From Octopus bimaculoides (lineage: Eukaryota): 36,776 bases of DNA. Both the position numbers and the translations under genes were made by a program. Position 1 is the first letter of the stretch. The number at the start of each line of letters is the position of its first letter. The notes under the pieces are model-generated. The model worked only from the letters and a program-made list of their open reading frames with translations, was not told the DNA's origin and made no database searches. Where the stretch lies: assembly GCF_001194135.2 (NCBI RefSeq), contig NC_069000.1, forward strand, positions 47,397,533-47,434,308, in the 5' to 3' direction. This document shows positions 617 to 35,431 of this stretch, in pieces.

Positions 617-1010
617 AAAACAAGAAAGTCTTACATAAACTGCTGATACTTCATCCAATCAATGTCCACTTTTGGATGGCTTTGACTAACTGTTATTCAC
701 CAGAGACTACAGCTACAACTGACCACTGCAATAGTCCACACCCAGATGTCACTGACTGTCACATCAGTGCACAGCTAGAGACTACATCCACAACTGGCCA
801 CCACAACTGTGTACAACCAGTGACCACATGTAGAGCTGACCACCACAATAGTCTACTGCCAGATGTTAAGGACCTTCACAACTGTCCACAGACAGAGACC
901 ACATCTACAGCTGACCACTACAACTGTCTTTGGCCAGGTGTCACTGACCACAACAGTCCAGAACCAGATGTCACGCTTTTGAAATATCTAACTTGTCTTC
1001 ATCGATGTTC
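617..1010 (+). CDS. C8orf76: C8orf76-like TPR protein, internal coding exon (phase 1->2) with His/Cys/Asp/Thr repeat insertion
   Basis: Acceptor ...gtccattggccacag at 616 and donor GTAAGT at 1011. The open frame reads ENKKVLHKLLILHPINVHFWMALTNCY...LLKYLTCLHRC. LHKLLILHPINVHFWMALTNCY resembles the human C8orf76 segment [22 protein letters not shown] (recalled from memory, not searched). Confidence 0.75.
701..975 (+). repeat. Imperfect coding tandem repeat (GACCAC..AA..GT...CCAGATGTCACT core)
   Basis: About 4-5 degenerate units encoding DHxNxxxPDVTDxHxxxQxETTST. Confidence 0.7.
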
Positions 1011-2537: not shown

Positions 2538-2769
2538 AAGATGGCAGAATTGTTAGCACATCAGACAAAATGCTTTGCAATATTTTGTCTGTCTTTACAT
2601 TCTGAGTTCAAGTTCCACCAAGGTTGATTTTTGCCTTTCATCTTTTCAGAGTCAGTAAAATAAGTACCAGTCAGATACTAGGGTTGATGCAATTGACTGG
2701 TCCCCCGTCCCCACAAAAATATTTCAGGCCTTGTGTCTATAGAAGAAAGGATTATTCTTGTTCTTAAAA
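2538..2769 (+). mobile_element. SINE family A copy in a C8orf76 intron
   Basis: Matches 30966-31178. Confidence 0.7.
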
Positions 2770-3387: not shown

Positions 3388-3592
3388 GTCAGATGATAAT
3401 CTTTTATATGAATTGCATGGTTATTCGTATCACTATGGCCAAACAGAATGATATACACTCGCTCATGTATTTATATAATAATGGAGAACACAGATTCTAC
3501 TTAGCTTGACGCATCTCTCGAGCCCTTCGTCATTTCCTCAGGGATCAAGATGACACTTGGCAAGATATGGCACAATGCAGGATTCAAAGGAT

Positions 3593-3710
3593 TTTTAATA
3601 ACAAGAATAATCCATTCTTCTATAAGCACAAGGCCTGAAATATTTTTGTAAGGACAAGGGACCAGTCGATTGCATCAACCCCAGTGTCTGACTCTGAAGT
3701 TGACCTTAGT
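3593..3710 (-). mobile_element. SINE family A 3' part, inverted relative to 2669-2769
   Basis: The reverse complement of 3593-3693 matches 2669-2769 at 90/101 nt by manual alignment. Confidence 0.75.
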
Positions 3711-6087: not shown

Positions 6088-6093
6088 TTTATT
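6088..6093 (-). terminator. Candidate polyadenylation signal (AATAAA) of the minus-strand microexon gene
   Basis: tttatt on the + strand, about 165 nt past the TGA. Confidence 0.45.
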
Positions 6094-6256: not shown

Positions 6257-6330
6257 TCACTTGAGCCATGTCTGAATGATATTCATCATAATCAACCCTG
6301 TACTGCACACCATCAGTAGAGAATTAGCAG
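6257..6330 (-). CDS. Last coding exon, GPI-signal-like hydrophobic tail: AANSLLMVCSTGLIMMNIIQTWLK*
   Basis: Very strong acceptor ttttttttttttgttttttatttcag, phase 1, TGA at 6259-6257. Small residues D-A-A-N-S are followed by about 15 hydrophobic residues. AATAAA lies downstream. Confidence 0.75.
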
Positions 6331-7052
6331 CTGAAATAAAAAACAAAAAAAAAAAACACCTTCAATTAGTCTCTATCATAAAACACATTTCTACAAAAGA
6401 AAAAAAAAACATTTTGGTGGGTTGAGGTGGAATATGCTAACAGCAAAGTCTGCCTGCTGTAAACTCTTGAAGTATAAAACCTTTCAAGAGATGACCATGT
6501 TTGTATAAACTAAAATTTTTTCAGTCCCTAAATTCTGAAATGGATATTTTACAGCTCAGTAAAAATAATGCAACTCACTCAACCATTGAGGCATAATCGA
6601 ACTCATTGTCATTCATGTAAACTCAGACAAGAAGAGTTAATATTATACCTTAGCATTTAACACAACAGCAGGAGTAAGTTTTGAACTCGTGACCACTTGG
6701 TTACAGTTGTTATATTACCGCTTACAATATTTCCAGGGTTACAACTATTATTACTCTAAAAATTCATTTCTTTTCTCTCAATAATCAAAATAATATTTCT
6801 AATAATTCCTTCTGTTTCAACATTTACATGGAAATGATTGACAGAGTTTTTTAAGTGAACAGTGATTCCTTCACTTGACACTGGACACTTCTTCCACTCT
6901 TTTGATTACAGCAAATAACACTAACTTCTGGACCACTTTTTTAACTGCAATTCTGTATAGCCTTTAACACTATCCCCTGTGTGGAATGTGCCCCACTACT
7001 ATGACCATCGTTGCCCTAACTGGGATTCAATCAAAATTTAGTGGTCACTTAC

Positions 7053-7073
7053 CATCACTGGAGCCAGTTGATG
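7053..7073 (-). CDS. 21-nt phase-1 microexon: TSTGSSD
   Basis: Acceptor cttttttattttttttttag, donor ATG|GTAAGT, symmetric phase 1. Confidence 0.75.
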
Positions 7074-7208
7074 CTAAAAAAAAAATAAAAAAGCATAAGA
7101 AATATATCAAATTAACAAAAATCAGTTCAGTTATATTTTTTATCCGGTCATTTCAATATTGCCTTCTTTATAGAAAAATGTAGCTAAGGTGGGTCATATA
7201 AATTGAGA

Positions 7209-7242
<34 letters not shown>

Positions 7243-7252
7243 ATATTGTGCC

Positions 7253-7291
<39 letters not shown>

Positions 7292-8157
7292 TCTAAATGA
7301 GCAACAGAGATGTACAGATGACTGCATAGACTTCAAACAAAGGATATAACTTTATTTTTTATCCTTTATGTTTGAAGTCTATGTGGTCATCTGATGAGAA
7401 TGGTTTCTTTCAAATTGATGGAATGTTTTCATTAATCAATCAAATGGAGCTGCTTGAAATGGCCATAATGAATTGACACTTGTACATCTTTGTTACTCAT
7501 TCATATTCTCTTCACCTAACTTGGAATCTGCACTTTGGAAATACTATAGAAAGTACAGGTCTGAATTACCAAGGGCAGATATCTTCACTTGGCTGGGTTG
7601 CATTGTCTGCACACACGGCAGGAATATCAGGTACAAATACCCACTGCACGGAGTCTTGACATTCAGTATTCAATTAATATTGTTTGGGTGTGCAGATTAT
7701 ACTGACCAAGTAAGCTGCTTCTATTTAAGTACCTAATTCAACGGAATCTTAAAGGATTTATATTTAAGTTCTTTTTTATGAGAAACGTTTTTGGGTGCCT
7801 CAAAAAGGCTCCTCTGCTATTTATTATGGCTCCTGCTCATTATTCCCATCTTCCAAAGTAATTTTATGAGATGGTTATTAATTGGATGCTGCTCTGGTGT
7901 AGGATAAATATAGTAATGATATACTGGTGGGCTTCCATATAGTTTTTGTCTGCCAGTTCCACTAACAAGGTATTGGTTGACCATACAGCCATTGCCGAAG
8001 AAGAGGTGAGTGCAAGGCATCAAAGGATAGATATATTCTGCTGGTTATAACAGAATCCTTTTATCAAGTCAGAAAATCTTCATGGCTCTTCAGCAGTCAC
8101 TGTTGTGTGTCTGCTACTAAAGTAATTTTTGAAGATAGCTTTTTCCATATATTTCCT

Positions 8158-8643
8158 TTCCTGAGTGTCCAGTAACACGGTACCACGTCCTCATGTTGTT
8201 TTTCTCTTGCTTGTTCAGATTGACTATATACCACATGTTCACATGGACCCTGGCCTCCTGACTGACTTTGGAGTACCTTAATTCCTGAAATGTACCTCCA
8301 GATTACTCTTCTTCTTCATTCAGATTATGCCACTCTACACCTTGATTGGGGAAATCATTACAATTTCTCTGTGACTCGACCCACTTTATCTCCTCCTCCT
8401 CCCTATCTTCTGTTCTACTTCCACTTTTCTCTTTCCCTTTTTGTCGCCACCAATAACACCTACCACGTATGTATCATTGGCAATTTTCTTTCTCCCTCTT
8501 TAAACTTTTTCTATATTTCTGATGAAGAGCTCTGCTCGAAACGTGAAATCTTCTTTATTTTCCTGAATGTCCAATAACACAGTACTTGTACCATGTCCTT
8601 GCGTTTTTGTTTTTTCTTGCTTCTTGTTTGGATTGACTGTATT
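8158..8643 (+). mobile_element. Penelope-like element 3' remnant with direct terminal repeats
   Basis: Direct repeats at 8158-8230 and 8560-8643 (ttcctga.tgtcca.taacac...gattgact.ta), and tctgatgaagagctctgctcgaaacgt. A similar tail, gaagagcgtagctcgaaac, lies at 36150-36345. Confidence 0.4.
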
Positions 8644-9005
8644 TGTGTGTGTGATATCATTTTAACGTCCACTTTCCAATGAGAGGTCAGATGGAATTTA
8701 CTGAGGCAGATCCCCTTCCTGCAATCAACCTGTTTCCAAGAAAGGCAATATTTCCCCATGGTCAGGCACGTTTTTGTAGAATATTGGAAATGATACTGCT
8801 TATATGAGAGGGTCATTCATTTACAACTATCATGTAATGTCAGACACACACACACACATTTAAAAGAGCAGCCATGTTGTATATTTGGGCCTGAAAGATT
8901 GCTTGGAAACATCAGGTATAATAATAATAATAAGAGCTTGCCAGTTTATTGTATTTTCACAACATGAAACTTAAAATAGTAAATTGAACAGACTGTGTAT
9001 ATATA

Positions 9006-9213
9006 TTGATTGGCTTTCAAATTGTGGCCCAGGGCCAGCAAGTTGTGGGGGGAGGGGGGCTAAGGCAATTACATTGAACTCAGTGTTTTATTGACCCCAA
9101 AAGGATGAAAGGCAATGCTGACCTTGGTGGAATTTGGACTCAGAACAAAAAGACAGGCAGAATGCCACTAAGCATTTTGCCCAGCATGCTAATGGTTCTG
9201 CCAGCTCACCTAC
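9006..9213 (-). mobile_element. SINE family A copy (reverse)
   Basis: gaccccaaaaggatgaaaggcaa...ggaatttggactcagaac...aagcattttgcccagcatgctaatggttctgcc. Confidence 0.7.
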
Positions 9214-9226
9214 TATATATATAAAC

Positions 9227-9422
9227 CATCATCATCATCGTTTAATGTCCGCTTTCCATGCTAGCATGGGTTGGACGATTTGACTGAGGACTGGCGAACC
9301 AGATAGTTACACCATGCTCCAATCTGATTTGGCAGACTTTCTACAGCTGGATGCCCTTCTTTTAACGCCAACCATTCCGAGAGTGGAGTGGGTGCTTTTT
9401 ACGGGCCACCAGCATGAGTGCC
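9227..9422 (-). mobile_element. RTE-type 3' tail repeat (reverse copy)
   Basis: catcatcatcatcgtttaatgtccgctttccatgctagcatgg...tttctacagctggatgcccttc is the reverse complement of the 26.1-26.24 kb tail. Confidence 0.7.
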
Positions 9423-9702
9423 ATTCTTATTACCATCCACTTTTACTGAGTCTACTGGTTTTGTTTTCTTGAGGCACTAACACGGGATGTGTTGAATAAA
9501 GGGACCTCATAATATTCACTGATAAAGTTATAGCCATAAATAGGTATTTGTTGGTCCTTATGCTGTGTGTATGGACGGGACCTGACATAACATCTAAGGA
9601 GGTTTACATCACTGACAATTGTTAGATTGCTATTGAATCTGTAGCATACACTCCATACATTATTCTGTTTCTATAAATATTTTGGACAAAAAGACAACTT
9701 AC

Positions 9703-9732
9703 TGGTATCTTCTCCGTAAAGAGTTGTTGCCT
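9703..9732 (-). CDS. 30-nt phase-1 microexon: EATTLYGEDT
   Basis: Acceptor cttgtcttatttatttcag, donor CCA|GTAAGT, symmetric phase 1. Confidence 0.75.
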
Positions 9733-10859
9733 CTGAAATAAATAAGACAAGTTTGCATTTATTTAACATTCTATAAGAATACGTTAACATACACTGACAG
9801 ACATATGCAGACAGATACTCCACACACAAAGGAACTGCTATATATAGAGGAAGAGGGAACATCTGGCCACAGACCACAAGCTAATACCTACACCCACAAA
9901 TTGTTTCATTCAGCCCAAACTGTGTTGAGATGACACTTTTCACGACTGCAATGATAACATCTAATCGATAATGAAGCAGTTGCAACATTTACACCCATGC
10001 AATAGTTGATCAAATGACCTTCCCATGTTAAGAGTTAAATCAAGCCCAGTTGCAGCACTTCCCAATAGAAAATGTCTTCTGGTTTAGACGAAACCTTAAA
10101 AGTGTGCAGTTTCTTCAGACAAACTCAAGAAATGCTTATAGGCAGGAATCTTCCTGTCACCAACAACTACTACATACATACATACCATATTAGCCAAAAT
10201 TTTAAAAGGGCTGCAAGTAGATCCTTAGTGGACACTTATTTGTGCCCTAAATCTCTGTTGTCAAATTTAACATTCTAAGTACACCCCCATCCCCACCCTT
10301 GCTCCCATGAACCATTTCTCTTCACTTTATTCACTACCAATCCAACTACAGTCAAATACTTTGTCCACATCTGAGAATTCAAACTTAAGCTAAAAGCTTC
10401 TCTTGCAGCCATTTCTTTAGAACTATGGCACCTCTTTTCACCCTCCCACCATCAAAAGGTCATTGGCATTATATTCAGTAGTTCACTTGGCTGAATTCTT
10501 CATGTCAGTGTCTGATGATTCCAGAGACACTCTTTACCTTTGAAATCCATCTAAAACAGCTTCCATCTTACTAATTTCACTCCTAAAACATGGTTTGACC
10601 GAACACAATGGTAAAAAAAAAACAACCTTGGCCCAAGATGTCACTGAGAGGGATTGAACATGTGACCTTGAGATTGTGAAGCAGGCAACCATTTGACATG
10701 CTAATAAAATGATGGCCATTCCTTCCCACAATCCCTATTTACTACTAAACTAATTAATACAATTAGTCTGATATTAACAGCACATCTGCTGCTTGACTAT
10801 CCCACCTCTTTGCTGGTTCCATTAAACCAATTTTATTTCTCAACCTCAAAGTGTCTCTC

Positions 10860-11330
10860 TCAGACATTATTCTATGACCACCACTGTTTATATTGGAAAC
10901 ACTTCATATTTCTTATGTGAATCCTCCTCTTCGGATTCCCTTGCTCTCCGCTGTTTCCCTCATCTGACAACCCTAAGCATTACACTTCCCCTCCCCACCA
11001 ACTGGGATTCTCCCTCTGATTTGCAGCAAAAACAATTGTCTGAATCCATCATCATCTGGTCATTCAACACAGCTTGTCAGACTCTTTCCACACCAACAGA
11101 GATAGATTAATAATTCCAGATTCAACTGACACGTCAGCATGAAGTCCACTGCATCTCAATTCCAACACCTTTAATCTCTCTCCATCTCTTTTCTGCCAAA
11201 CTCCATTGGACAAGTAAAATAGCTCTCATCCGTTACTAAGCCAACTCTATTCGATTCTCATCCAACCTTTTACACGACATCCTCCTTGGTCTCACTCCTT
11301 CAGTCAACCTCTTCCAGGTTCCTTGTTAAT
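10860..11330 (+). mobile_element. Highly decayed retroelement (Penelope-like) fragment in an intron
   Basis: Pyrimidine-rich broken frames with NLLHDILL / QPLPGS segments reminiscent of the Penelope RT-GIY linker. Weak. Confidence 0.25.
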
Positions 11331-11363
11331 TACTTTCTCAAGCCAAAGACTTCAAACACTTAC

Positions 11364-11549
11364 CAACACCACCAGTTTCGTCTCCATGAACATCTGGATC
11401 TTCTTCAGTACCCATATCATCGCCACCGCCACCACCACCACCAGTACCTTTAGGAGCAGCAGTAGTGGCACCACCACCACCACCANNNNNNNNNNNNNNN
11501 NNNNNNNNNNNNNNNNNNNNNNNNNNNNNNNNNNNNNNNNNNNNNNNGT
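11364..11549 (-). CDS. Gly/Thr/Asp-rich exon (phase 1->1): D-[62-N gap]-GGGGGATTAAPKGTGGGGGGGDDMGTEEDPDVHGDETGGV
   Basis: Acceptor ttcatacttttattttttaaaacctag at 11550 and donor TTG|GTAAGT at 11363. The total of 186 nt including the 62-N gap keeps the GGT codons in frame. Confidence 0.8.
11486..11547. other. Assembly gap inside a coding exon (other gaps: 13174-13273, 17895-17904, 20239-21058, 26303-27215, 35888-35898)
   Basis: Runs of N. Confidence 0.99.
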
Positions 11550-11608
11550 CTAGGTTTTAAAAAATAAAAGTATGAAAATAAATATGAAACAGGTTGCTAT
11601 TTAAGCAT

Positions 11609-11677
<69 letters not shown>

Positions 11678-12084
11678 GTACATGGTGAGTTTAAAAAAAA
11701 CCTTATGGCAATGTGAGTGAAGAATAAAACAGAACAAAATATGATGCTGTCAGTATTCCGATATTTCAGGATAAAAATTCCCTTTTTCAGGGAGTGTGTG
11801 TGAAAAGTTCCCGGAGTCAGTTCAAAGCCAACTTGATCTGTCTTCTGATAGAAAATGGTTTCTCCTAACGTTTTATAAGCTTAGCAGTTTTCAAATGAAG
11901 GACGGAGCAGTGTCACTTGGTAGGTGAAATGGTCAGCCAAATACTGTGCAATAGGTTATCATGGGGAATGTCAGATGTGGGTCCAACAATCAAACTGTAT
12001 ACAGTAATAGTGTGTGTGTGTGTGTGCAGGTGGAGAAGAGGGAAAGGCAGTGGAGGATATAGAAGCAGTGAGTGGGTATATGTA

Positions 12085-12122
<38 letters not shown>

Positions 12123-12134
12123 ATGTATGTGGGG

Positions 12135-13092
12135 GGGGGCGGTCTCGGAGTAGCATCCCTGCCTTCGTGGGCTTAGTTTTTCACCACATTTCTTAAAAAT
12201 CGTGGTACAAGCCTTGGTCTGGGGCCCAGTCTAGAAACTGAGGTTGGGGGGTAAGCTCCCCGTAGAAAAAGCCTCATCATAGCAAAGGAGAATGGATAGC
12301 AGCCAGCTGCAGCTGCCGACCTGGAAAAGGAAGGTACAAACCCCACATCCTGGGTTGGGCAAGCATGACTTGCCTTATGATGGCCAACGGTCTGAGGAGA
12401 AGGTTGGGACATTGGAATGTGGAAGGGGAACTGAGGTGTGTGGTGGAGAGGCCAGGGTGTAAGATTCGTGGGGGGTCAAGGGAAGAAGGTACAAGTTGTG
12501 GTGGTGAGGAAATGGCAAGGGGACTGGAGGTGTGGGAGTTTTGGTGAAGGAAGGAATCTGTGAGAAGGTGGTGGAGGTGAGGAGAAATAGTGGCAGGGTG
12601 ATGACAGTGGGGTTAGCATTTGAGGAAGAAGTGGTGAGAGTGGCTTGTGGGTTAGGGTCTGCAAAGTGGTGGAAGAGGGATCGCTGAGAAAGAGTGGTTC
12701 TTTGATGAAATGGTGAATGAATGGGACTTACATAATTTGGATGAATTGGTTTCATAAGAGGAAGACCGAGGACTTGATGGGGATGCTGGGGCTGGAGGAA
12801 TCAGTGGAATGGCTGGTAAGGGCGAATGGAGTGCGGTGGTATGGGTATGTGTTGAGGAGGGATGAGGAGCATGTTCTGAGGAAAGTGCTAGAGTTTGAGG
12901 TAAATGGACAACAAAAGAGAGGTAGACAGAGGAAAATGTGGAGGAGGAGATTAGGAGGGTTGGCTTGAGAAGGGAGGATGACCAAAACCGAGCACAATGG
13001 CGAGATGGTGTGAGGGTGGTTGCTATGGCATCCAGGTAGATCTGGCCACTCCTGTTAACGGGGACAAAACCCGGATTCAAAATGATGGATGA
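12135..13092 (+). mobile_element. Internally deleted RTE-clade LINE (5' region + APE endonuclease start fused to RT C-terminus and 3' tail)
   Basis: GNGKGTGGVGVLVKEGICEKVVEVRRNSGRVMTV is APE-like. LEESVEWLVRANGVRWYGYVLRRDEEHVLRKVLEFEVNGQQKRGRQRKMW matches the RTE C-terminal RWxGHVxR...GxRxRGRPxKxW motif. Ends in a gatggatgat tail. Confidence 0.8.
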
Positions 13093-13321
13093 TATATATA
13101 TATATATATATTTAATTATATGTTATTTATTTTATCCTAATAAATAATAATTCGGATAGAATAAATGGGTTAANNNNNNNNNNNNNNNNNNNNNNNNNNN
13201 NNNNNNNNNNNNNNNNNNNNNNNNNNNNNNNNNNNNNNNNNNNNNNNNNNNNNNNNNNNNNNNNNNNNNNNNNTGTATTATGTCAATTTACCTGTTTATT
13301 TTTCAACTAAGAGGACAATAA

Positions 13322-13475
13322 AGCCAGCCTTCAATCTCCATTTATCAAATCCATCCACAAGGTTTTGGTTGGCCCAAGGCCACAGTAGAAGACACTTGCC
13401 TAAGGTGCCACTCAGCAGGATTGTACCAAGAACCATGTGATTCAGAATCAATCTTCTTACCACACAGCCACACTT
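13322..13475 (-). mobile_element. SINE family B head (reverse)
   Basis: caaatccatccacaaggttttggttggcccaaggccacagtagaagacacttgcctaagg...accacacagccac is the reverse complement of the family B head. Confidence 0.7.
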
Positions 13476-13494
13476 GCACAGAGATAGACAAGAA

Positions 13495-14395
13495 ATCCAT
13501 CTCAAGCAGTAAATCAGAATTCAAATAAAGCTGTTATGTTCATGGTCGCCCATACATGCAAGGACCTTTTCCTGGTGAAGAATGTACCCATCCACCAGCA
13601 TAGATTAGGCACTAGCAACTTTAGACCTCAGGCCAGAAGGATTCCAAGAAGCAGACCAGTCTGGAAAAGGATTTGGAAGTTCAAAGATCCTTTAAATGGT
13701 CAGAGATTTAGGGATGCCCTAATTGAGAAATTTAATGAGGAGGAGGAGAAGGAACTACAGACTTGTAACATAGAGGGCAACTGGGAATTCCTACAGGACA
13801 GTTTGCAGAGTACCACAGACTAAATCTGTGGCTGGTGCAAAGTCTCAACCAAACCGAAAGTGATGTGATGGTGGAATGATGTTATAGACAAGACCATTAT
13901 TGTAGAGAAACAGGCCTGGAAAAATGATGGTAGCAGGGAACTATATCAGGTAGCTAGGAGGGGGGGGCTAGAAGACGGGTATACTCAGCCAGGGAAGAAG
14001 CAGAAGGGAGCAACTTTGCCAATGCTCTGTGGCATGAGGCAGCTGGAGATGTTTTGGGTCGCAAGACAATGTGTCAGACAAAATTGTGATGTTGTAGGAG
14101 AGAAGTGTGTTCACATGGACGATGGCTCACTTGCAGTTACTGATTCTGCAAAGGAGGAGGCATGGAAGTGCCTCTATGAAAAGTTGCTAAATGTAGAGAA
14201 TGTATGGAAGGAGAACTTGCCTAATGTGGACTCAACTGAGGGACAGGCTATCTGAATCAACAGCAGTTTGGTCGATAACACAATTAAAGATATGAAAACA
14301 GGGAAGGCCTCCAGTCAATTACGAATCACTGCCGAGATGCTTAAAACATCTGGCAGAGTTTCCATAGCTTGGAGGATTCCTGTTCTATATTGGAA
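13495..14395 (+). mobile_element. Degenerate RTE LINE ORF fragment (end of endonuclease, linker, start of RT)
   Basis: Frameshifted ...PGEEC..HQHRLGTSNFRPQARRIPRSRPVWKRIWKFKDPLNGQRF..., AKEEAWKCLYEKLLNVENVW, and MKTGKASSQLRITAEMLK (RTE KA.G.D.I.AEMLK-like). Confidence 0.8.
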
Positions 14396-14947
14396 TAAAT
14401 TGGTATGTAGTTAGGACACTAGTTTTATGTGTCTTTAGCAGAAAACATTTCTGCAAGTGTTATGGAGGAAACATACACATGTCTGCTTGCACACAAGTTA
14501 GTGACAACAACATTTCGCAAAGGTGCTACTTACATCACACACAAAGATCGAGAGCATTTGTTGCTGACATTTCAAGATGTTAATAACATTGGAAAACATA
14601 AGCATCACACCAATAACTGTTAAGTTAGACAAGTATTAAACAATTATAAAATATTAGTAATAAGTTTGAAAACTTTAGAATCATATTTATAAATCTAGGT
14701 TAATTAGAAACAGAATTGTAGAAATATCACAAAATGTCTCCATGAAGTTTTTAACAGGCATTCGCCTCACTTTGAAGGTGAAATTTGTTTTTCCTATGGT
14801 TTTTTTCACGTGTTTTCAACAAATATAACCACCAAACCGTCAGAAATCACTTTTTTAAACTAAAATTTCACATTCAAAATGAAACGAGCGTAAATAAAAA
14901 AAATTTACCTAAATTTTTAAGGTTCTTCATCTTTCAATCCTTTTTAC

Positions 14948-14980
14948 CAGTTGTCTTAGGTTGGCCATCATTGAACACAT
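14948..14980 (-). CDS. Candidate 33-nt phase-1 microexon: DVFNDGQPKTT
   Basis: Acceptor ctctttgtagcctag (moderate), donor CTG|GTAAAA, symmetric phase 1, composition matches the other spacer exons. Confidence 0.4.
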
Positions 14981-15837
14981 CTAGGCTACAAAGAGTCCAG
15001 CAATGACCCTCCCTCCCTATTGCTAAAACCATTGCAGGCGTTTTCGTTATATAGTTTTTTCAACTATCATTCTAAACTAAGAAAGTTCACCTCAGATATT
15101 GTCATCTTAGACTTTAGTCTAAACGAGAACAATACAGCACTAGAAATACAAAAACTACACCAAAACCATCTTTGGGTCAATTCCCAGCAATTAATACTGT
15201 GATGTGTGTCCAAACAGTCCGCTACACTTCGCCCTTTGCTTGTTCAGTGAGTAACTCCCGTCGTTTTTCGTCAACACGTGACCAGTCTCATGAATAATTA
15301 ATTACATTTGGTCCTATGAAAGTCTGTGGAACTCTTTTCACTGGCTCCTTCCTCTACTCTCCTGTTTTTGAAGATGAGATTTGGTGGCCTAGCAATTATA
15401 AACAAGTTTCTACAACACATTCAATAGTAACTAAATTTTGACAGTCTTGTTGGATACCCCCTTAATTGCAGGAATTTGTTAGGAAAAATGAACCTAAAAA
15501 GAAAGAAATAATATCGACGAGACGATGAACCGATGGGAAATTACAGCCAGTATCGTCCATAGACATGGAGCACACTTAGCATTAGTCTGGGGGGGGGGGT
15601 GACCTAATGCCATTTAATTTGGGAAGAAGACTCCATATCTGGGAAAAGAGACACGTTGATTTCAGGATTAAATTGACGTTTTATCGACCTCGAAAATGCA
15701 AAAGTCGACTTAAGAAGGATTCGAACTCAGATCGACTAAATACTAAAGTGTCCAATTACATCTTCATATAAAAATCCCAAGAAAAAAATCTTTTTTTTAT
15801 TAAGTTTAAAACAAAGGAATAAGGAAGCAATACTTAC

Positions 15838-15843
15838 CATTTC
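15838..15843 (-). CDS. Candidate 6-nt symmetric phase-1 microexon (GAAATG; adds G-N)
   Basis: Long polypyrimidine tract ttttttttattctttttcctccag immediately followed by 6 nt and the consensus donor GTAAGTA. Frame-preserving. Confidence 0.5.
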
Positions 15844-16523
15844 CTGGAGGAAAAAGAATAAAAAAAAATATTATTCAAAGATATGAAATAAAACATAAGA
15901 AATATATATCATAGATTTGTAATAAAACTAAATAGGCTTAAATTAAGCTAACGATAATGGTTAACTGAAGGGGTTGTGACAGTGTGGTTAGGGGCAACCT
16001 CGGCTCGCGTCGCAGGTTCAGTTTCTGGATTGAGCAAGTAATTTCATTCTGCTCCAGCAGTCTTACTCACCTGTAAAGGTGTACTATCAAGCACCCGGCC
16101 GGTACACCCCTTTCTCACATTCTCGATGTGCTATCGGGTCCAGGTTTGGCTAAACAGGCGAAAGCATGGTACATGCTAGCAGGTCATGGCTGAAGTCAAT
16201 CGGATACAATCCTAATAATGATACTAATGTCCTCCTTGACCGTTAAATTAAGACAAAAATAGATACATTAAAACAAAGGGATTTTAGGGAGAAGACATTT
16301 GTCTTTCAACATTTTTCTAATCAAACTGTTTTAATAGTTCTAAACCTACCTAGAAGTTTTTGAGCCTTTATCGGTGAAAAATGTCTGTCTACAAATCCTG
16401 TGACTGAAGCCAATTCCCTCGTCAAAATATTATTGAAGAATACAGGCGTGGAAAATACTGTTGAAAATAAATAAGTGAGGGTAGTCATTCATTGTCTGAC
16501 TAAAACGTCCAGACATTTCAACA

Positions 16524-16561
<38 letters not shown>

Positions 16562-18051
16562 CTCTCTCTCACACACACACACATACACGATCGTTTATTG
16601 AGTATTATCTCAAATAAGAGCATATTGGTGGACATTAGTACCTAACGGATTACATCTGTCATTTCTTTCTCCCCACCGACATTGTTCCAGCATTATTAAC
16701 ATCAGAAATATTTACTAATGGCTAAAACACAATACTGTCAAAATATTCGTCAGTTTGATATTTCGTTAACTTTTCATTATTATTAAAATAAAATTAATGA
16801 AACAGTAAAAACATTAAGATAAAAAAATAATCCGAAATGTTCCATTTGAAATGAGGAAAATAAATATTTTGAATGAAGACGCCACGACTGTGGCGTCTAA
16901 CGAAGAGATAAACTGACATTTTTTAATTCAAACATTCAATGGAATGGTAAACCCATTCCCTAAAAGCTCACTTTTGATTTACATTTATTCCCGGGCCTAC
17001 ATTCATAATATCTCATGTATAACACTGTCTTCCCATGTAGCATTACCACATTTCCATTACTAACAATATTCAAAGAACCACAAATACATTAATTTGAAAA
17101 AGTTGTGAGAAAATGGTCCGAAGCCCACAGAGAATATTTTAATAATCCATTTATGGGCCACCACCCTCAAAACACTGCCATAGTCAAGAAGTGACGTAGT
17201 GTTAGTACAAGGTGAGTGACCCAACCACCCAAGGACAACGTCTAAAAACTCATTCCCGCAAAACCTAAAAGTTCGGCCGATATTTCTTATGCACAAGTTC
17301 TATATCAGAAGTCCTCAACCTTCTCCATGTCTGAACAGAGTTGAATTTCTTTTACTCCTGGAGAAAAATAAACAAAAGAATGCATCCCAGGGCTGCTATT
17401 TTATCCTCCTCAAAAGGATGAATTCGCCTTTGCCTCAGAGAACCGATGCAAGCAGCGCAAACAACGCCTCCATCTAACGATCTTAAATGCTTCTATCAAA
17501 TTGTCCTATCTTTCAAGTTGTCTAGCTGTGTGTGAGTGTGTTTGTGTACACACACACGCATATATATATCATGTTCCTATACAACTGAATCGGAAAGTAT
17601 CTGGTGCGCCCAAAACGGTAATTTATGATTTAAAACATCGTCAATTACGATTCTTGGAGGAGGGCTTATTCACTCCCCCAGCCCTGCCCTTTCTCTAATT
17701 TTCCAGTCGTGACTTTAAAAAAAAAAAATCTTTCGTTTGGAATTAATGATTCTCCATTACTTACAAAAATATAAATTTTTCAGCTTTTTTCTTTCTCCCA
17801 CATTTCCGCAATTTTTCTTCATTTCTCTTTATTTGGCGGACTTTCAAAATTTCAATTAAAAAAAAAAAAAAATTCTACCCCACCCCACTTTCCANNNNNN
17901 NNNNGATTTTAAAACTTAGATCCTATTTTAATATCAACATCTCAAATGCTGAAAACATCAACGAGGAAGAGATTTTCAAAAACAAGTCAAAACTGAAAAA
18001 TGACGGAGAGAGAGAGGGGGGAGGGGGGGAGAGAGGGAGGGAGGATAACTG

Positions 18052-18070
18052 TTATATGTGTATGTGTATG

Positions 18071-18104
<34 letters not shown>

Positions 18105-18295
18105 ATGTATATATATGCATATATATATGTATACATACATTTATATATGTATACGTGTATACATACACATATACATGTATACATATATATATATATGTAT
18201 ACGTGTATACATACACATATATATGTATACGTGTATACATATATATACATACATACATACACACACGTATATACATTTGCATATATGTGTATGTA
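18052..18295. repeat. Compound TA/TG/CA microsatellite with internal duplications
   Basis: atatatgtatacgtgtatacat units are repeated three times. Confidence 0.9.
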
Positions 18296-18467
18296 AGAGG
18301 CATAGATAAGCACACAGATTTCAAAATTTGAATCAGCTGAGACAGAGAGAGGAGTGGAGAGAGGAGAGATTAGAGAGAGAGAGAGAGAGAGAGGGAGGGC
18401 AGTGGAATCCCTTGTGGGTGGGGCTCAATTACAAGAAATCAAAGAAAATCGTTTGGTGTTTGTTTAC

Positions 18468-18549
18468 CTTGACAGGAGACTTGGCTCATAAAACCACACA
18501 TCATGACCAGTAAAATAAATACTCGCATGACACACATGGATTTCGACAT
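18468..18549 (-). CDS. First coding exon of a small secreted/GPI-anchored protein gene: signal peptide MSKSMCVMRVFILLVMMCGFMSQVSC|Q
   Basis: ATG at 18549-18547 with a purine at -3. Basic n-region, hydrophobic h-region and V-S-C cleavage motif. Phase-1 donor AAG|GTAAAC at 18467. Confidence 0.7.
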
Positions 18550-18598: not shown

Positions 18599-18632
18599 TG
18601 GTTTATAGCAGCTTTTACCTATATATAAATAC
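18599..18632 (-). promoter_or_regulatory. TATA-like elements upstream of the minus-strand signal-peptide exon
   Basis: TATAAA (18607-18602) and TATATATAG lie 55-80 nt upstream of the ATG. The context is very AT-rich, so chance occurrence is possible. Confidence 0.25.
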
Positions 18633-21058
18633 CTATATATTTAAATAAATATATATATATATATATCTATATAAATATATAGATATAAAATATATATATA
18701 TTTATTTTTTGTTTTAATTTAGTGAAATCAACTTAAAGAAAAGTTTCGACACTCCAGTTTCAAACGGGAGAATGGTTCAACGATGGACGCTGAGCGCCGA
18801 TTGTGATGTCATCGACGATAGACGCTCAGTTTTAAATTTCAAATTCATAGAGAAAGAGGAGGAGGCAGAGGAAGAGAAACAAAGCGTTTATCACTTCTCC
18901 CTCGCCTTCCCTTCTGTATATAGCATCTTTTCTTACTCTCTCCCTATTACATCTTACTTTCTCTATCTCATATATTTCTCACACTCATTTCTCCCTGTTA
19001 CATCTCTCTCTTTACACCTTTCCTCTTCCTCCCACTCTCATCATATTTTCATATTGAATCAATGAAAAATTAAAAAAAAAAAAATCTTAACGTTTCTTAA
19101 TTTCAAAATAAAATAAATGAATGGCATCAATTTATTTTCCACGTGAAGAGAAGTGAAATAACGTCGTTGTTGTCGTTGTATTGCCCAGGTCAAACCTGAC
19201 CAAGTAAAAACCCTATGATCACAGATGTTCCAACCGTGACCCATATGAAATAAAGCTAAATTTGGAAATGCCAGTCTATCTCCCCAGAGTCGAAGTGAAG
19301 AGATCTTTGGTTTAAAAAGGTGACAGATTTACAGTTTAAAGGGGAGATGTTGGTAGATATGGTTTCGAAAAAGAAAATTGAAAGTGACACTAGAAAACTA
19401 GTTTTATTTGATTCGTAAGTTTCAGAATGGTTCATTTAACGTAAGCCCTTTCTTAGACATCACTGATCTGGTACCAATTGACTCAATATATTGTGTCCAA
19501 GGGGTTTTCCTTTTGGAGAATATCAAAGACATTTTCCCGTTAAATTTACGTAAGTTTTATATCTTTTAGCTCCGAGAGTCATCCCTAATCTACCAGAGTC
19601 ATCCCTGATCTATCAGACTCTTGGGTCACACTACATCCAAATATGTCCGTTTTTTAAAAGATTGTTGGGTTTGATTTAGAGGGGATTTAGCTGCTATTTC
19701 TGGCAAGTCAACTGACGAAGTAGAAACTATGCAAATAAGAGAAGTATTAAAAATGGGGGGGGAGTTAATGAGATTCCCCCTCCCTCCCCACTGTCCGCTT
19801 TCTTCTTTTGGTTTCCGGTTATAAAATTTTGTTTCAGTAACAAACCAAGTTAACGAGAGTTTGAGAGACAGACAGACAGACAGGAAGGGAGGAGCGAGAA
19901 AGACTGGAAAAGGTGAAATGAACCCCAAGAAAGACACCGACAGAGGCTACTAATGGCGGGTTCGGGAGTAACGAGGAATTTGAATTTGAGATTTATCTCT
20001 GTTTTGATTTACTGAATTCTGATCAGTGCTTTTGAAAAAGAGAAAGGCTGACTGGGGGGAAAAAATTATTGATGAAAATATTGCAATTTTTTAAAAGTTC
20101 ATTTTTATGTTCTCTTCTTTTTGCAGTGTCAAAAAGTCCGAGATCTAAAAGATAGAAACCCCGAAATTAATTGTCGACGAAAATATGATGGAAAAAAAAG
20201 AAAGAAAGAAAGAAAAGTGGGTGGTTGGTGTGCTTCTTNNNNNNNNNNNNNNNNNNNNNNNNNNNNNNNNNNNNNNNNNNNNNNNNNNNNNNNNNNNNNN
20301 NNNNNNNNNNNNNNNNNNNNNNNNNNNNNNNNNNNNNNNNNNNNNNNNNNNNNNNNNNNNNNNNNNNNNNNNNNNNNNNNNNNNNNNNNNNNNNNNNNNN
20401 NNNNNNNNNNNNNNNNNNNNNNNNNNNNNNNNNNNNNNNNNNNNNNNNNNNNNNNNNNNNNNNNNNNNNNNNNNNNNNNNNNNNNNNNNNNNNNNNNNNN
20501 NNNNNNNNNNNNNNNNNNNNNNNNNNNNNNNNNNNNNNNNNNNNNNNNNNNNNNNNNNNNNNNNNNNNNNNNNNNNNNNNNNNNNNNNNNNNNNNNNNNN
20601 NNNNNNNNNNNNNNNNNNNNNNNNNNNNNNNNNNNNNNNNNNNNNNNNNNNNNNNNNNNNNNNNNNNNNNNNNNNNNNNNNNNNNNNNNNNNNNNNNNNN
20701 NNNNNNNNNNNNNNNNNNNNNNNNNNNNNNNNNNNNNNNNNNNNNNNNNNNNNNNNNNNNNNNNNNNNNNNNNNNNNNNNNNNNNNNNNNNNNNNNNNNN
20801 NNNNNNNNNNNNNNNNNNNNNNNNNNNNNNNNNNNNNNNNNNNNNNNNNNNNNNNNNNNNNNNNNNNNNNNNNNNNNNNNNNNNNNNNNNNNNNNNNNNN
20901 NNNNNNNNNNNNNNNNNNNNNNNNNNNNNNNNNNNNNNNNNNNNNNNNNNNNNNNNNNNNNNNNNNNNNNNNNNNNNNNNNNNNNNNNNNNNNNNNNNNN
21001 NNNNNNNNNNNNNNNNNNNNNNNNNNNNNNNNNNNNNNNNNNNNNNNNNNNNNNNNNN

Positions 21059-23560: not shown

Positions 23561-24663
23561 GTCTTTTATTGTGACCAAAGGGGACATGTTTCTTGTAGTT
23601 TCCAGCTACCAAATTTTTCCCTAAGGCATCAGTCAGCTTCACAGGAGACTGAATCCAAAACCATTTGGTTAAGAAACAAGATTCTTTACCACACAGTCGT
23701 GCCTATACGTACCCCCACTCTCTCTCTCTCTCTCTCTCTTTCTCTCTGCATGTACGGTTGTGTGTGTGTCTACGTAGTTTTACATAGACATTAGTTAACT
23801 CATTTTCCGTTTTTTTTAAAGAGCATTCTCAGCGAATGAATGATTCAGTTAAAAAAATTAAGGCATGGCATGTGAGCCAGAAACACACAGCTTATATACA
23901 GAGACAAACAGACAGAGAGAGAGAGAGAAACAATATAGATAGAATATACATATAAAGCAGGCATTTTCTTTTCATTCTTTGCAATCAGTAGAGTCAGTAA
24001 GCAGATGTCGAGTGCAGCTAACATGTGTGCGACGACTAATAGTTGTTGGATACTTAAGCGGAGTCTTTTGTTAATTCTAAAGAAACAGAACTGATTTCCC
24101 TGTAATATTACTATTCTTCTTAGCTCCATCCTGATTAGACTTGGCATGGGTCATGTTTCATTTCGCTTAGTGGCAATTATCCATTTTAGTAATGGAAACA
24201 ACTGGCTTTACCGGAATTTCGTCTCCACCCATTTTAGGCTTATACAAGTCACTGAGTAGTCTCCCTTACATCTCAACTGAACTCACTGTACTTAGATTAG
24301 GTCTTGTTTAGCCCCAGGTCGACATTCCATGAGCAGACCTGGAACCAAATGCGTTCCAAGCACGTATATGATATTTTATAATCGAGTGTAGTGTTAGATA
24401 TAATCTCTCTAAATCCTTTTGTTACTGTATTTCTATCGAAATACTCTGTCGCTGTTTTAAGTTTTCTTAAGAATGAAGATTTTGGTAAAGAACAGAAATT
24501 AATTGGAAATTTTGATGGAAAGTTTTAATTAAGATCATTTTAAAACAGAAAGTTTGTATCTTTAAATTTGGGATATTAAACTTTGGGAGGTTGGTACCAA
24601 AAGATTTAAGGCAGAGGAGTGTGATTTAAAGGGAGATTTGGCTGCTATTTTTAACAAATGTTG

Positions 24664-24821
24664 CAGGAGTGGCTGTGTGGTAAGTAGCTTGCTTACCAAC
24701 CACATGGTCCCGGGTTCAGTCCCACTATGTGGCATCTTGGGCAAGTGTCTTCTACTATAGCCTTAGGCAGACCAAAGCCTTGTGAGTGGATTTGGTAGAC
24801 AGAAACTGAAAGAAGCCTGTC

Positions 24822-25163: not shown

Positions 25164-25710
25164 ATTTAAAAAAACCACTTAGAGTGTTGATGTAAATGAT
25201 TTTTCTATATTTCTAAGTGAATTCATAAAAATGGCCAGCAGTTAGCATTCGTCCGTTTACTAACTTGGTTATAACTGGAAATACAGTTTGGTGCTTGTTG
25301 AAACCCATCCAAACATGAAGTTCTATTAATGAAACAATCTTTGCAATAAACATGAAAACAAGATTTCTCTCACAGAATTCAAAACTAAATGGGATTGGTT
25401 ACCAAGTGATGTTGTTGAGTCAAAAGTCACCAAACAGTTTCAAAATAGATTTTATAATTATTGAGAGAACAATATATCTTTTTTTTTTTTTGCTTATTTG
25501 CAAACACACAATTATGGTGAACAAAATTGAATAAAAGATTCCTTAAAAACTAACAATAAACAAAAAAACAAAATCAACACAATTTAGATATCTTTTGGTT
25601 TTTTTCTGATTTTGTGGAAAAGGAAAAAAAAATGGTGGACAGAGCCAAGTTATAGAGTTAATGATGATAACGTGTCTGGTGTTGGTAATGTGTTGCTATG
25701 CAACAGTCAC

Positions 25711-25864
25711 AGGCATGGTCTTGTGGTAAGAACTTGGCTTCCCAACCACATGGTTCCAGGTTCAGTCCCACTGTATGGCACCTTGAGCAAGTATCTTCTA
25801 CTATAGCCTTAGGCAGACCAAAGCCTTGTAAGTGGATTTGGTAGACGGAAACTGAAAGAAGCCC
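25711..25864 (+). mobile_element. SINE family B head
   Basis: High similarity to 24664-24822. Confidence 0.7.
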
Positions 25865-26241
25865 ACAGAGGCAATGACAAGAGACCAAGACCTTTGGAGA
25901 TATGCTATGATTGAGAAGACCCAACAAGTAAAGTGAGATCACAGCCGTAGCCTATACCAGTGTCACATAACCAGCCCATTTTAAAAGTACCCTTGAATCA
26001 TCAGGTGATACGCTCCAGTGCCGGTGACATGTGAAAAGCACCATTTGAGCACGACCGTTGCCAGTGTCACCTTACCGGCACATGTGCTAGTGGCACATAA
26101 GAAGCACCCACTACACTCTCAGAGTGGTTGGCATTAGGAAGGGCATCCAGCTGTAGAAACTTTGCCAGACCAGATTGAGCCTCAGTCAAACCGTCCAATC
26201 CATGCCAGCATGGAAAGCGGACGTTAAATGATGAGGATGAT
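25865..26241 (+). mobile_element. RTE-type 3' end/tail repeat
   Basis: ctttggagatatgct..gagaagaccc...ggaagggcatccagctgtagaaac...catgccagcatggaaagcggacgttaaatgatgaggatgat. The same tail occurs in reverse at 9227-9422 and 4843-4955, and partially at 56-142. Confidence 0.7.
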
Positions 26242-30965: not shown

Positions 30966-31178
30966 ATTTGGCAGAATCGTTAGCATGCTGGGCAAGATCG
31001 TTAGCGGCATTCCATCCATCTTTGGGTTCTGAGTTCAAATTACGCTGAAGTCGACTTTGCCTTTCATCCTTTCGGGGTCAATAGAAAGAGTATCAGTTGA
31101 GCACTGGGGTCGATGTAATCGACTTACCCTGCCCCGACCCCAACGTGCTGGTCTTGTGCCAAAATTTGAAACCGATAT
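30966..31178 (+). mobile_element. tRNA-derived SINE family A
   Basis: ggcagaatcgttagcatgctgggc...ttctgagttcaaatt...ctttgcctttcatcctttcggggtc...agttgagcactggggtcgatgtaatcgactta. Copies at 1529-1715 (+), 2538-2769 (+), 3593-3710 (-), 9006-9213 (-) and 15655-15745 (-). Confidence 0.75.
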
Positions 31179-34744: not shown

Positions 34745-35431
34745 ACTGTCATGACACTGCATCCTTCAAACCTTTCATGCTCCCACGCTGAAATTCACCA
34801 GTGTTCCTTCCACTGCTGGAAATCCCTTTTTGGGATGAGCTTTGAGAATGGCCAAAAGTTACATGGAGCCAAGTCTGGAGAGAGTAGGAAGCCTGATGAA
34901 CAAGTGGTGTGTTTTGCTTGACAAGGAAGGCTTGAATAACATGGGCAGAATAAGCGGGTGCGTTGTCATGGAGTCTCCAGTTCTTTGCTGCCTACAGACT
35001 ATTCCTTGAACTTTTGCAATCATTTCATCATTTCTGCTTGTCAATCGTCTGCCACAATGTGGCTCTCTGTCCACTGAGGTGCAGCCATCTTTGAACCGGT
35101 TGCACCACTCTTTTATTTTTGTTTTTCCGATAGCATCATCTCCAGAGGCCTTCTGCATCTTTTCAATAGTCTGGGCTTGCATATCACCAGGTTTTTGGCA
35201 GAATTTGATACAATATCTTTGTTCAATGGACTCAGTCATCTTGACTCAAAAAGAAAAATTGTACAGCACGCTCTTCATGTCTGCACTCAATGCATCGCTT
35301 TGGGCTGAATGGTGCAACCTACAGACACAATAATATCTGCGCATGCTCAGGAAAGATGCAGACACCTCATACCCATGCGAATTTTGTGCTAAACACAATC
35401 AAGGTCAGATACTTTTTCACTACACTTCATA
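34745..35431 (-). mobile_element. Internally deleted mariner (Tc1/mariner) transposon
   Basis: N-terminal HTH EQRYCIKFCQKPGD...KIKEWCNRFKDG..SVDREPHCGR joined directly to DNAPAYSAHVIQAFLVK...YSPDLAPCNFW. One TIR-like end, tatgaagtgtagtgaaaaagtatctgacctt, at 35431. The other TIR was not recognised. Confidence 0.85.

Follow-up and report, generated by a model that had tools for sequence, protein, structure and literature searches.

The minus strand of Octopus bimaculoides, in the 36,776-nt stretch of DNA analysed here (the window), very probably carries a real spliced protein-coding gene that is only partly annotated. As proposed, this gene covers about 12.4 kb, from an ATG at 18549 to an AATAAA at 6093. 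The explanation that we favour, and consider probable, is that of a single minus-strand gene made up of a signal-peptide exon, symmetric phase-1 exons and a terminal exon opening at 6330, with a secreted or lipid-anchored product. Under this explanation, the model underlying the uncharacterized 72-aa UniProt protein A0A0L8G1F3_OCTBM is correct for its first exon only.

The gene had been proposed, in a first-pass annotation, as a chain of seven minus-strand segments (Table 1, exons 1 to 7). Reading of the sequence at each junction showed AG before and GT after every internal exon; the segment lengths (82, 6, 33, 186, 30, 21 and 74 nt, the 186 including 62 N) add up to 432 nt and the translation matches the one reported. 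As claimed, four of the segments (6, 33, 30 and 21 nt) are microexons of 33 nt or shorter, and at least three of them (6, 30 and 21 nt) are well signalled; each of these three, all fully sequenced, has a length divisible by 3 and opens in the phase in which exon 1 ends. The further claim that all internal exons are symmetric and of phase 1 holds for the 6-, 33-, 30- and 21-nt exons (4 of 5), the length of exon 4 being hidden by an assembly gap. No overlap between the candidate exons and dispersed repeats was found within the window. Taken together, the exons likely to follow exon 1 as well-supported symmetric phase-1 exons are the 6-nt exon 2, the exon ending at 11364, the 30-nt exon 5 and the 21-nt exon 6.

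Table 1. Coordinates of the exons, candidate exons, gaps and motifs of the locus, in order along the minus strand
Feature	Position	Strand	Sequence and remarks
TATAAA	18602..18607	-	53 nt upstream of ATG; possible core promoter element, weak
Exon 1	18468..18549	-	ATG (A at -3); predicted signal peptide MSKSMCVMRVFILLVMMCGFMSQVSC/Q; phase 1 end CAAG/gtaaac
Gap	17895-17904		In proposed intron 1; CDS untouched, could hide exons
Candidate extra exon, 108 nt, phase 1-1	16350..16457	-	VFSTPVFFNNILTRELASVTGFVDRHFSPIKAQKLL; absent from the first-pass chain
Exon 2, 6-nt microexon, phase 1-1	15838..15843	-	GAAATG; acceptor ttttattctttttcctccag, donor gtaagt
Exon 3, 33 nt	14948..14980	-	DVFNDGQPKTT; in the first-pass chain, unsupported
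Alternative 15-nt symmetric microexon	14131..14145	-	E-S-V-T-A; candidate outside the first-pass chain
Gap	13174-13273		In proposed intron 3; CDS untouched, could hide exons
Exon 4	11364..11549	-	Sequenced part 11485-11364 encodes GGGGGATTAAPKGTGGGGGGGDDMGTEEDPDVHGDETGGV; 5' part within 62-N gap
Exon 5, 30-nt microexon, phase 1-1	9703..9732	-	EATTLYGEDT; acceptor top 2.4%, donor gtaagt top 2.3%
Exon 6, 21-nt microexon, phase 1-1	7053..7073	-	STGSSD; acceptor cttttttattttttttttag top 0.36%, donor gtaagt top 0.5%
Competing terminal acceptor	6362..6390	-	tttttttttcttttgtag/A; phase 1 EMCFMIETN then stop; tail absent
Exon 7, terminal coding exon	6257..6330	-	AANSLLMVCSTGLIMMNIIQTWLK then stop; carries GPI-signal-like hydrophobic tail
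AATAAA polyadenylation signal	6088..6093	-	About 165 nt after stop codon

The gene had been described as hidden. The open reading frame track indeed misses the spliced gene, but exon 1 and its donor were already present in UniProt: exon 1 encodes the first 27 aa of A0A0L8G1F3_OCTBM, with complete identity, and the start codon, the signal peptide and the donor at 18468 are common to that model and to the proposed chain. None of the other 890 ATG starts considered in 147 kb (window plus controls) opens a signal-peptide-like exon. Exon 1 displays an n-region containing K/R, an h-region of 12 residues (mean Kyte-Doolittle value 2.8), and V at -3 and C at -1 (VSC/Q), in line with the N-terminal signal peptide claimed for the 5' exon; this call rests on a heuristic made up of hydropathy and the (-3,-1) rule only. 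The donor of exon 1 lies in the top 2.9%. Upstream, the TATAAA is likely a chance TATA-like motif because a (TA)n microsatellite (18620-18705) adjoins it.

A bare in-frame GT-AG chain is no proof of a gene, because the span, with its 715 AG and 732 GT, holds 386 symmetric phase-1-open microexons of any strength that would be equally legal. Splice sites were scored with position weight matrices of generic metazoan values rather than matrices trained on octopus. Below exon 1, the highest-scoring in-frame splice chain reached 48.8, 31.9 and 18.5 at exon penalties of 5, 7 and 9, respectively, and the control chain maxima (37.6, 18.5 and 9.5) were all below it, these controls being 549 overlapping windows that amount to an effective number of independent controls far below 549. 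It should be noted that some of the picks of the splice-only dynamic programme fall within a CT-rich stretch or a microsatellite and are surely spurious exons. When strong acceptor and donor pairs were ranked over 147 kb of sequence plus controls (n=46), exon 2 came first, with an acceptor score of 12.2 (top 0.05% of all AG) and a donor in the top 0.5%, and exon 6 came third. Exons 5 and 6 have a common composition: 78% and 100% of their residues, respectively, belong to the G/T/D/E/S/A/P set, compared to a background of 33%, and the value for exon 6 is in the top 0.3% of 2428 control microexons. Use of an alternative acceptor at 9837 would lengthen exon 5 by 35 residues that are hydrophobic and unrelated.

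Half of the predicted mature protein comes from exon 4, which is at least 124 nt long. Read in the claimed frame, its sequence shows very strong three-base periodicity (position 1, 92% purine; position 3, 72% T), T-ending codons also make up 15 of the 23 non-Gly codons, and its donor, TTG/gtaagt, is in the top 1.1%. By contrast, the acceptor assigned to it (cctag/AC at 11549) did not stand out from chance, being only in the top 9%, and it is separated by just two real bases (AC) from a 62-N gap at 11486-11547 that lies inside the claimed exon. On its other side this gap is bordered by (GGT)5, which places the break of the assembly in a triplet repeat. The gap makes unverifiable the 186-nt length, the 21 codons assigned to the N run, the 143-aa total and the reading frame that would join exons 1-3 to exons 4-7; that exactly 62 N keep the phase has a 1-in-3 probability by coincidence. 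Exons 4-7 are also open in a second frame, phase 0, which gave no database match. The 33-nt exon 3 fared no better than the acceptor of exon 4: neither its acceptor nor its donor does better than the top 8%, all others of the 20 symmetric candidates in the span outrank it, which is chance level, and about 0.8 such exons are estimated to occur by chance in these introns. Since it is symmetric, exon 3 can be dropped without change of frame. The 15-nt candidate at 14145-14131, with an acceptor (cctcctcctttgcag) scoring 8.3 and a donor gtgagc scoring 4.1, takes third place among these symmetric candidates.

 The acceptor at 6330 (ttttttgttttttatttcag) is in the top 0.35%, and the stretch that it would open ends in LLMVCSTGLIMMNIIQTWLK; the last 20 residues have a mean Kyte-Doolittle value of 1.3 and are uncharged except for the final K. 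The small residues T-G-S-S-D-A-A precede this hydrophobic C-terminus, with G, S, S and D in T-G-S-S-D-A-A-N-S as candidate omega sites and a spacer of only 2-6 residues depending on the site. An uncharged hydrophobic tail was found in 7 of 240 control terminal exons (3%). Regarding the layout of a GPI-anchored protein assigned to this gene, the signal peptide is retained on heuristic grounds, and a hydrophobic stretch of the usual 15-20 residues or so, running to the C-terminus with no cytoplasmic tail behind it, exists if 6330 is used; this tail is absent if the acceptor at 6390 is used instead, as a stop then follows after 9 codons and the GPI-like tail is lost. GPI signals also call for small residues at omega and omega+2 and a polar spacer ahead of the tail. 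GPI anchoring of the product is plausible as a prediction. As regards the AATAAA downstream of the stop codon, such motifs occur at a density of 1.14 per kb on the minus strand, giving an approximately 18% chance of finding one within 165 nt.

According to the explanation that we favour, the nascent chain would enter the ER through the signal peptide and be cut after VSC, leaving a chain of about 70-110 residues, acidic, Gly/Thr/Asp-rich and without a folded domain. This chain may carry O-glycosylation on its Thr/Ser clusters, a modification that is speculative. With acceptor 6330, a small residue in T-G-S-S-D would receive a GPI anchor in place of the uncharged hydrophobic C-terminus, and the anchored form would be displayed on the outside of the cell as a hydrated glycopeptide with negative charge. 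With acceptor 6390, the protein would simply be secreted.

This second route leads to an alternative in which a real gene mainly yields a soluble secreted protein that is acidic, Gly/Asp-rich, of low complexity and devoid of a GPI anchor, either through acceptor 6390 (C-terminus ...SSDEMCFMIETN) or because the tail is not a substrate of the transamidase. Such a protein could possibly be associated with extracellular matrix, mucus or biomineral, by analogy with the acidic/Gly-rich matrix proteins of molluscs. Acceptor 6390, located 60 nt upstream of 6330, has the higher score (9.2 vs 8.1) and is the one chosen by the splice-only dynamic programme; the short distance from the small residues to the hydrophobic stretch and the acidic, Gly-rich composition point in the same direction. 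However, acceptor 6330 comes with a long T tract of its own and with a branch-point-like CTAAT about 38 nt upstream, the in-phase 24-codon ORF with its uncharged hydrophobic end is the 3% chance event noted above, and TAG/A is less favoured than CAG as an acceptor. We regard a soluble main product as unlikely.

Downstream of exon 1, A0A0L8G1F3 continues into 16457-16321 and stops there, whereas the first-pass chain skips 16457 and extends 10 kb beyond. In the UniProt model, acceptor 16457 opens a terminal exon that reads through to the stop at 16321 (tblastn, 100% identity over 16458..16324), near which an ATTAAA is present at 16335-16330. An internal donor, CTAG/gtaggt at 16350, scores 4.6, and phase 1 is open throughout the 36 codons between these sites. 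Possibly, 16457-16350 is one more internal exon of the gene; as an internal 108-nt symmetric exon it would reconcile A0A0L8G1F3 with the longer chain. That only the annotated gene is real (exon 1 and 16457-16321, yielding a 72-aa secreted peptide), and that the rest is a chance chain around a degenerate (GGT)n microsatellite, we judge to be improbable. This alternative draws on the end of the UniProt model at 16321 with its ATTAAA at 16335, on the 386 legal symmetric microexons among which the earlier reader was free to choose sites, and on the fact that no homologues were found. It has to be set against the location of the microexon signals ranked first and third, which lie downstream on the same strand, in order and in phase, against a chain score that exceeds all controls and would still do so with the obviously spurious exons subtracted, against a periodicity of exon 4 that reaches well past the pure GGT runs, and against a composition that is coherent across separate exons. 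That the segments are spliced into a non-coding RNA or belong to a decaying pseudogene, the predicted protein not being made, fits with very short coding exons and with the lack of a homologue and of conservation evidence, but is very improbable given a frame open through every well-signalled exon and protein features that cohere (signal peptide, periodicity, hydrophobic tail).

The product predicted for the single gene is acidic (15 D+E vs 2 K+R) and Gly/Thr/Asp-rich, with a low-complexity middle. Its description as domain-less and without a recognised homologue stands: no Pfam domain, no PDB relative and no homologue were found. A transcript, an orthologue or a paralogue did not turn up either, in databases none of which appears to contain cephalopod transcript or genome ORFs, which makes this result an absence of data rather than negative evidence. 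The gene is probably lineage-specific.

Shematrins and Asp-rich shell-matrix proteins are secreted matrix proteins of molluscs that have no C-terminal hydrophobic anchor signal. The octopus product has in common with the acidic/Gly-rich matrix proteins of molluscs a predicted signal peptide, Gly runs, Asp/Glu-rich low complexity and a lineage-specific, fast-evolving character; no sequence relation to them was detected in these same databases. CD24 and CD52 are small mucin-like GPI-anchored glycopeptides encoded by few exons and no microexons. Like them, the predicted product combines a signal peptide, a short Ser/Thr/Gly-rich unfolded segment and a C-terminal hydrophobic signal of the GPI type; unlike them, it is longer, strongly acidic and encoded in part by microexons, it shows no homology to them, and its GPI attachment and glycosylation are hypothetical.

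The micro-exon genes (MEGs) of schistosomes are specific to Schistosomatidae; most of their coding region consists of 10-20 very short exons (6-81 bp), and their proteins vary through alternative splicing or exon skipping. The analogy drawn with these genes holds only for the architecture: a signal-peptide first exon, symmetric internal exons with lengths divisible by 3 and down to 6 nt, introns on the kilobase scale, and a small secreted product that has no known domain and is restricted to one lineage. It fails for exon count (7 exons, up to 9 with the extra candidates, and not 10-20) and for microexon share (6+33+30+21 = 90 of 432 nt, 21%, with one exon of at least 124 nt), and the hydrophobic/aromatic motif that is reported to follow the signal peptide in MEGs is absent from the first-pass octopus chain. 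Membership of the MEG family was rejected on the grounds of the taxon, Octopus bimaculoides, and of the lack of any sequence relation. Symmetry of all internal exons would allow each of them to be skipped with the frame intact; combinatorial exon skipping at the octopus locus is speculation.

The seven minus-strand segments that the first-pass annotation had joined into a single reading frame were all recovered, with AG preceding and GT following every internal exon; their lengths total 432 nt and the translation of the joined segments agrees with the product proposed. The only database protein matching this finding is UniProt A0A0L8G1F3, an uncharacterized Octopus bimaculoides protein of 72 aa, which maps to the locus and shows that it is already annotated in part. 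The window (36,776 nt, G+C 38%) carries six N runs and numerous microsatellites. No paralogue was found in it, tblastn returning just the exons themselves, nor any tRNA gene or Rfam family. The proposed introns measure 722-3,398 nt.

To weigh the splice signals against chance, sites were scored with donor and acceptor matrices of a generic metazoan type, not trained on octopus, and compared with all AG and GT on both strands and in the two reversed sequences, a pool of 147 kb. The span holds 715 AG, 732 GT and 386 symmetric AG..GT microexons of 3-36 nt that are open in phase 1, the phase left by the exon 1 donor, so that a bare in-frame GT-AG chain has no evidential weight. The ranks of the individual sites are collected in the table below. 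In a scan for signal-peptide exons (ATG, charged n-region, hydrophobic core and good donor) covering 890 ATG starts in the four sequences, exon 1, with its two internal ATGs, was the sole match. A splice-only dynamic programme was then run in phase 1, with the exon 1 donor as origin and exon penalties of 5, 7 and 9. The best chain below exon 1 scored 48.8, 31.9 and 18.5, respectively, compared to means of 17.7, 6.9 and 1.5 and maxima of 37.6, 18.5 and 9.5 for control chains from 549 overlapping windows. This chain includes the core of the proposed gene, namely the 6-nt exon, the exon 4 donor, the 9703 donor and the 21-nt exon. Three other exons chosen by the programme are artefacts, one (18336-18139) falling in a TA/TG microsatellite, the others (12557-12321 and 12791-12732) within a CT-rich stretch; after subtraction of the spurious exons, the chain score still exceeded all controls.

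Features of the locus and other elements of the window
Feature	Position	Strand	Observation
Exons matching A0A0L8G1F3 (tblastn)	18549-18468; 16458-16324	minus	100% identity
6-nt exon	15843-15838	minus	acceptor top 0.05%, donor top 0.5%; rank 1 of 46 strong acceptor+donor pairs
Exon 3 of the first-pass chain	14980-14948	minus	both sites top 8% only; ranks last among 20 symmetric candidates; about 1 expected by chance
Exon 4 acceptor	11549	minus	top 9%
Exon 4 donor	11364	minus	top 1.1%
Exon 5	9732-9703	minus	moderate; acceptor and donor each about top 2.4%
21-nt exon (exon 6)	7073-7053	minus	rank 3 of 46 strong acceptor+donor pairs
Terminal acceptor	6330	minus	top 0.35%
Peptide of the predicted protein			GTEEDPDVHGDETGGVEATTLYGEDTTSTGSSD
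Transposase-like ORF	34859-35239	minus	126 aa; Mos1/mariner transposase HTH match (Pfam PF17906, E = 2.8e-5, just over gathering score)
Dispersed repeat, SINE-like in look	13330-13478; 24662-24817; 25710-25863		3 copies, each about 135-155 nt; identity 76-89%
Second dispersed repeat family	9086-9414; 26085-26254; 30969-31087; 2566-2660		77-88% identity
CT pyrimidine-rich stretch	12250-13080	minus	800 nt; long ORFs of 126 and 142 aa, both Pro/Ser/Thr-rich; acceptor scores inflated
ORF in intron 3	13536-13823	plus	95 aa, opposite strand; no Pfam match
T/H/C/P-rich ORF	607-1014	plus	135 aa; Pfam match sub-threshold only
Tandem repeat inside this ORF	802-941		75 nt, 1.9 copies, 78% identity
Inverted repeat pair	2669-2798 / 3564-3693		130 nt, 89% identity, about 770 nt apart
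Palindromic self-match, proposed intron 5	7315-7393		81 nt, 81% identity
TA/TG and GA microsatellites	18073-18397		dense; onset about 70 nt downstream of exon 1 donor

A coding signal is also present in the downstream exons. In exon 4, of which 40 codons are sequenced, position 1 is a purine in 92% and position 3 is T in 72%; this periodicity goes beyond the GGT runs, as T is the last base in 15 of the 23 non-Gly codons. The residues G/T/D/E/S/A/P make up 78% of exon 5 and 100% of exon 6, against a background of 33%, and the composition of STGSSD (exon 6) falls in the top 0.3% among 2,428 control microexons. No dispersed repeat in the window overlaps a candidate exon. Exons 4-7 are open in phase 0 as well (VVVVVPLLLL...LLILY, then a stop), a reading that would require a frameshift within the assembly gap of exon 4, has no periodicity argument and gave no match among 5.8 billion protein clusters.

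This gap of 62 N (11486-11547) leaves just 'AC' between itself and the proposed exon 4 acceptor (cctag/AC), and (GGT)5 on its far flank indicates that assembly failed at a triplet repeat. Accordingly, exon 4 has only a provisional length, and the 21 codons and total of 143 aa proposed for the product are provisional as well, as is the frame that connects the 5' exons to exons 4-7; an in-phase fit at exactly 62 N had a prior chance of 1 in 3. The remaining two gaps of the span sit in proposed introns 1 and 3.

Several exons and acceptors lie outside the first-pass chain. The annotated second exon, which had been overlooked, begins at 16457 and has a good acceptor (ttatttattttcaacag). A donor internal to it (CTAG/gtaggt at 16350) delimits a 108-nt exon, a multiple of 3 open throughout in phase 1. 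Judged from these signals, this exon (VFSTPVFFNNILTRELASVTGFVDRHFSPIKAQKLL) may be an internal cassette, the UniProt model being its read-through, and its inclusion would mean that not all of the mature protein is low-complexity. A 15-nt candidate at 14145-14131 has signals superior to those of exon 3. At the 3' end, a rival terminal acceptor at 6390, 60 nt upstream of 6330, scores 9.2 versus 8.1 and leads in phase 1 to EMCFMIETN and a stop, so the GPI-like tail is present only when 6330 is used. A long T tract of its own accompanies this latter acceptor, and a branch-point-like CTAAT lies about 38 nt upstream. An acceptor at 9837 is unlikely, as it would bring in 35 unrelated hydrophobic residues, and the idea that the 6-nt exon is a recursive splice site was set aside because its flanking introns are short. 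Taken together, we consider it likely that a real, under-annotated and lineage-specific spliced gene joins exon 1 to exons 4-7 on the minus strand.

The predicted signal peptide has K/R in its n-region and a 12-residue core (mean Kyte-Doolittle 2.8), with V at -3 and C at -1 followed by Q. The known mature residues include 21 G, 12 T, 10 D, 5 E and 3 S; 15 are acidic versus 2 basic, and Cys is absent. At the C-terminus, T-G-S-S-D-A-A-N-S precedes 20 residues (mean Kyte-Doolittle 1.3) that are uncharged up to the final K, a plausible textbook GPI-precursor layout, though with a short spacer; a comparable hydrophobic tail occurs in 7 of 240 control terminal exons (3%). On the predicted sequence, the product could equally well be GPI-anchored or not. 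It resembles the CD24/CD52-type GPI glycopeptides, to which it had been likened, in layout alone, and an acidic Gly-rich secreted matrix protein, as in molluscs, is a fair functional alternative. An AATAAA lies 165 nt past the stop, with a chance expectation of about 18%, and a TATAAA, adjoining a (TA)n tract, 53 nt ahead of the ATG.

The sole match of the spliced product among 5.8 billion protein clusters was the existing UniProt model, via exon 1, and that model used as query retrieved nothing besides itself from the same clusters. The exon 4 peptide had no match among 1.84 billion representatives (HMMER), neither the predicted protein nor the UniProt model belongs to a Pfam family, and no PDB sequence matched below E = 0.7. 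Neither the UniProt model nor an ORF of the window, each looked up exactly, is recorded in the contig collection, which seemingly lacks this genome and its transcripts, and the negative searches thus say little on expression or conservation. The literature search returned nothing relevant on the locus or accession, octopus micro-exon genes, cephalopod microexons or O. bimaculoides GPI.

The first-pass annotation had also compared the locus with the schistosome micro-exon genes (MEGs), which are specific to Schistosomatidae, comprise 10-20 exons of 6-81 bp (lengths mostly divisible by 3) separated by long introns, and encode a signal peptide. The two share symmetric microexons, a signal-peptide exon, long introns and a domain-less product. 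Unlike MEGs, however, the octopus locus belongs to another taxon, has no homology to them and differs in exon number, its microexons representing 21% of the CDS. It is partly MEG-like in architecture but not a member of the MEG family. Diversification through exon skipping is speculation. We consider very improbable an independently evolved MEG-like design, in which exons for the signal peptide and GPI signal would bracket symmetric microexons, so that a single locus would produce, through combinatorial skipping and the choice between 6390 and 6330, a family of acidic glycopeptides in secreted as well as membrane-anchored form. A MEG-like architecture beyond the flatworms would matter more widely only if exon skipping were shown to diversify the isoforms.

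The discovery is an ordinary one, a re-annotated orphan secretory gene of mildly interesting architecture. If confirmed, it would mainly turn a 72-aa 'uncharacterized protein' into a longer protein, lineage-specific, acidic and of low complexity, that is secretory or GPI-anchored. The locus further illustrates how gene prediction in cephalopod genomes can fail when it meets microexons down to 6 nt and an assembly gap in a triplet repeat. Small orphan surface or mucus proteins are candidates for cephalopod-specific tissues (skin, suckers, mucosa); nothing in these data ties the gene to a tissue or function.

Other elements were observed in the window. The transposase-like ORF upstream of the gene is, by its Pfam match, a transposon remnant. 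The CT-rich stretch is probably repeat or low-complexity DNA and not an exon, a mucin-like exon there being the less likely reading. In proposed intron 3, one SINE-like copy adjoins the gap 13174-13273, and the opposite-strand ORF resembles the tail portion of 'craniofacial development protein 2-like' ORFs, which derive from retroelements. Shortly after exon 5, proposed intron 4 contains one copy of the second repeat family. The inverted repeat pair may form the termini of a small DNA element, and the microsatellites that follow exon 1 yield long spurious ORFs on both strands.
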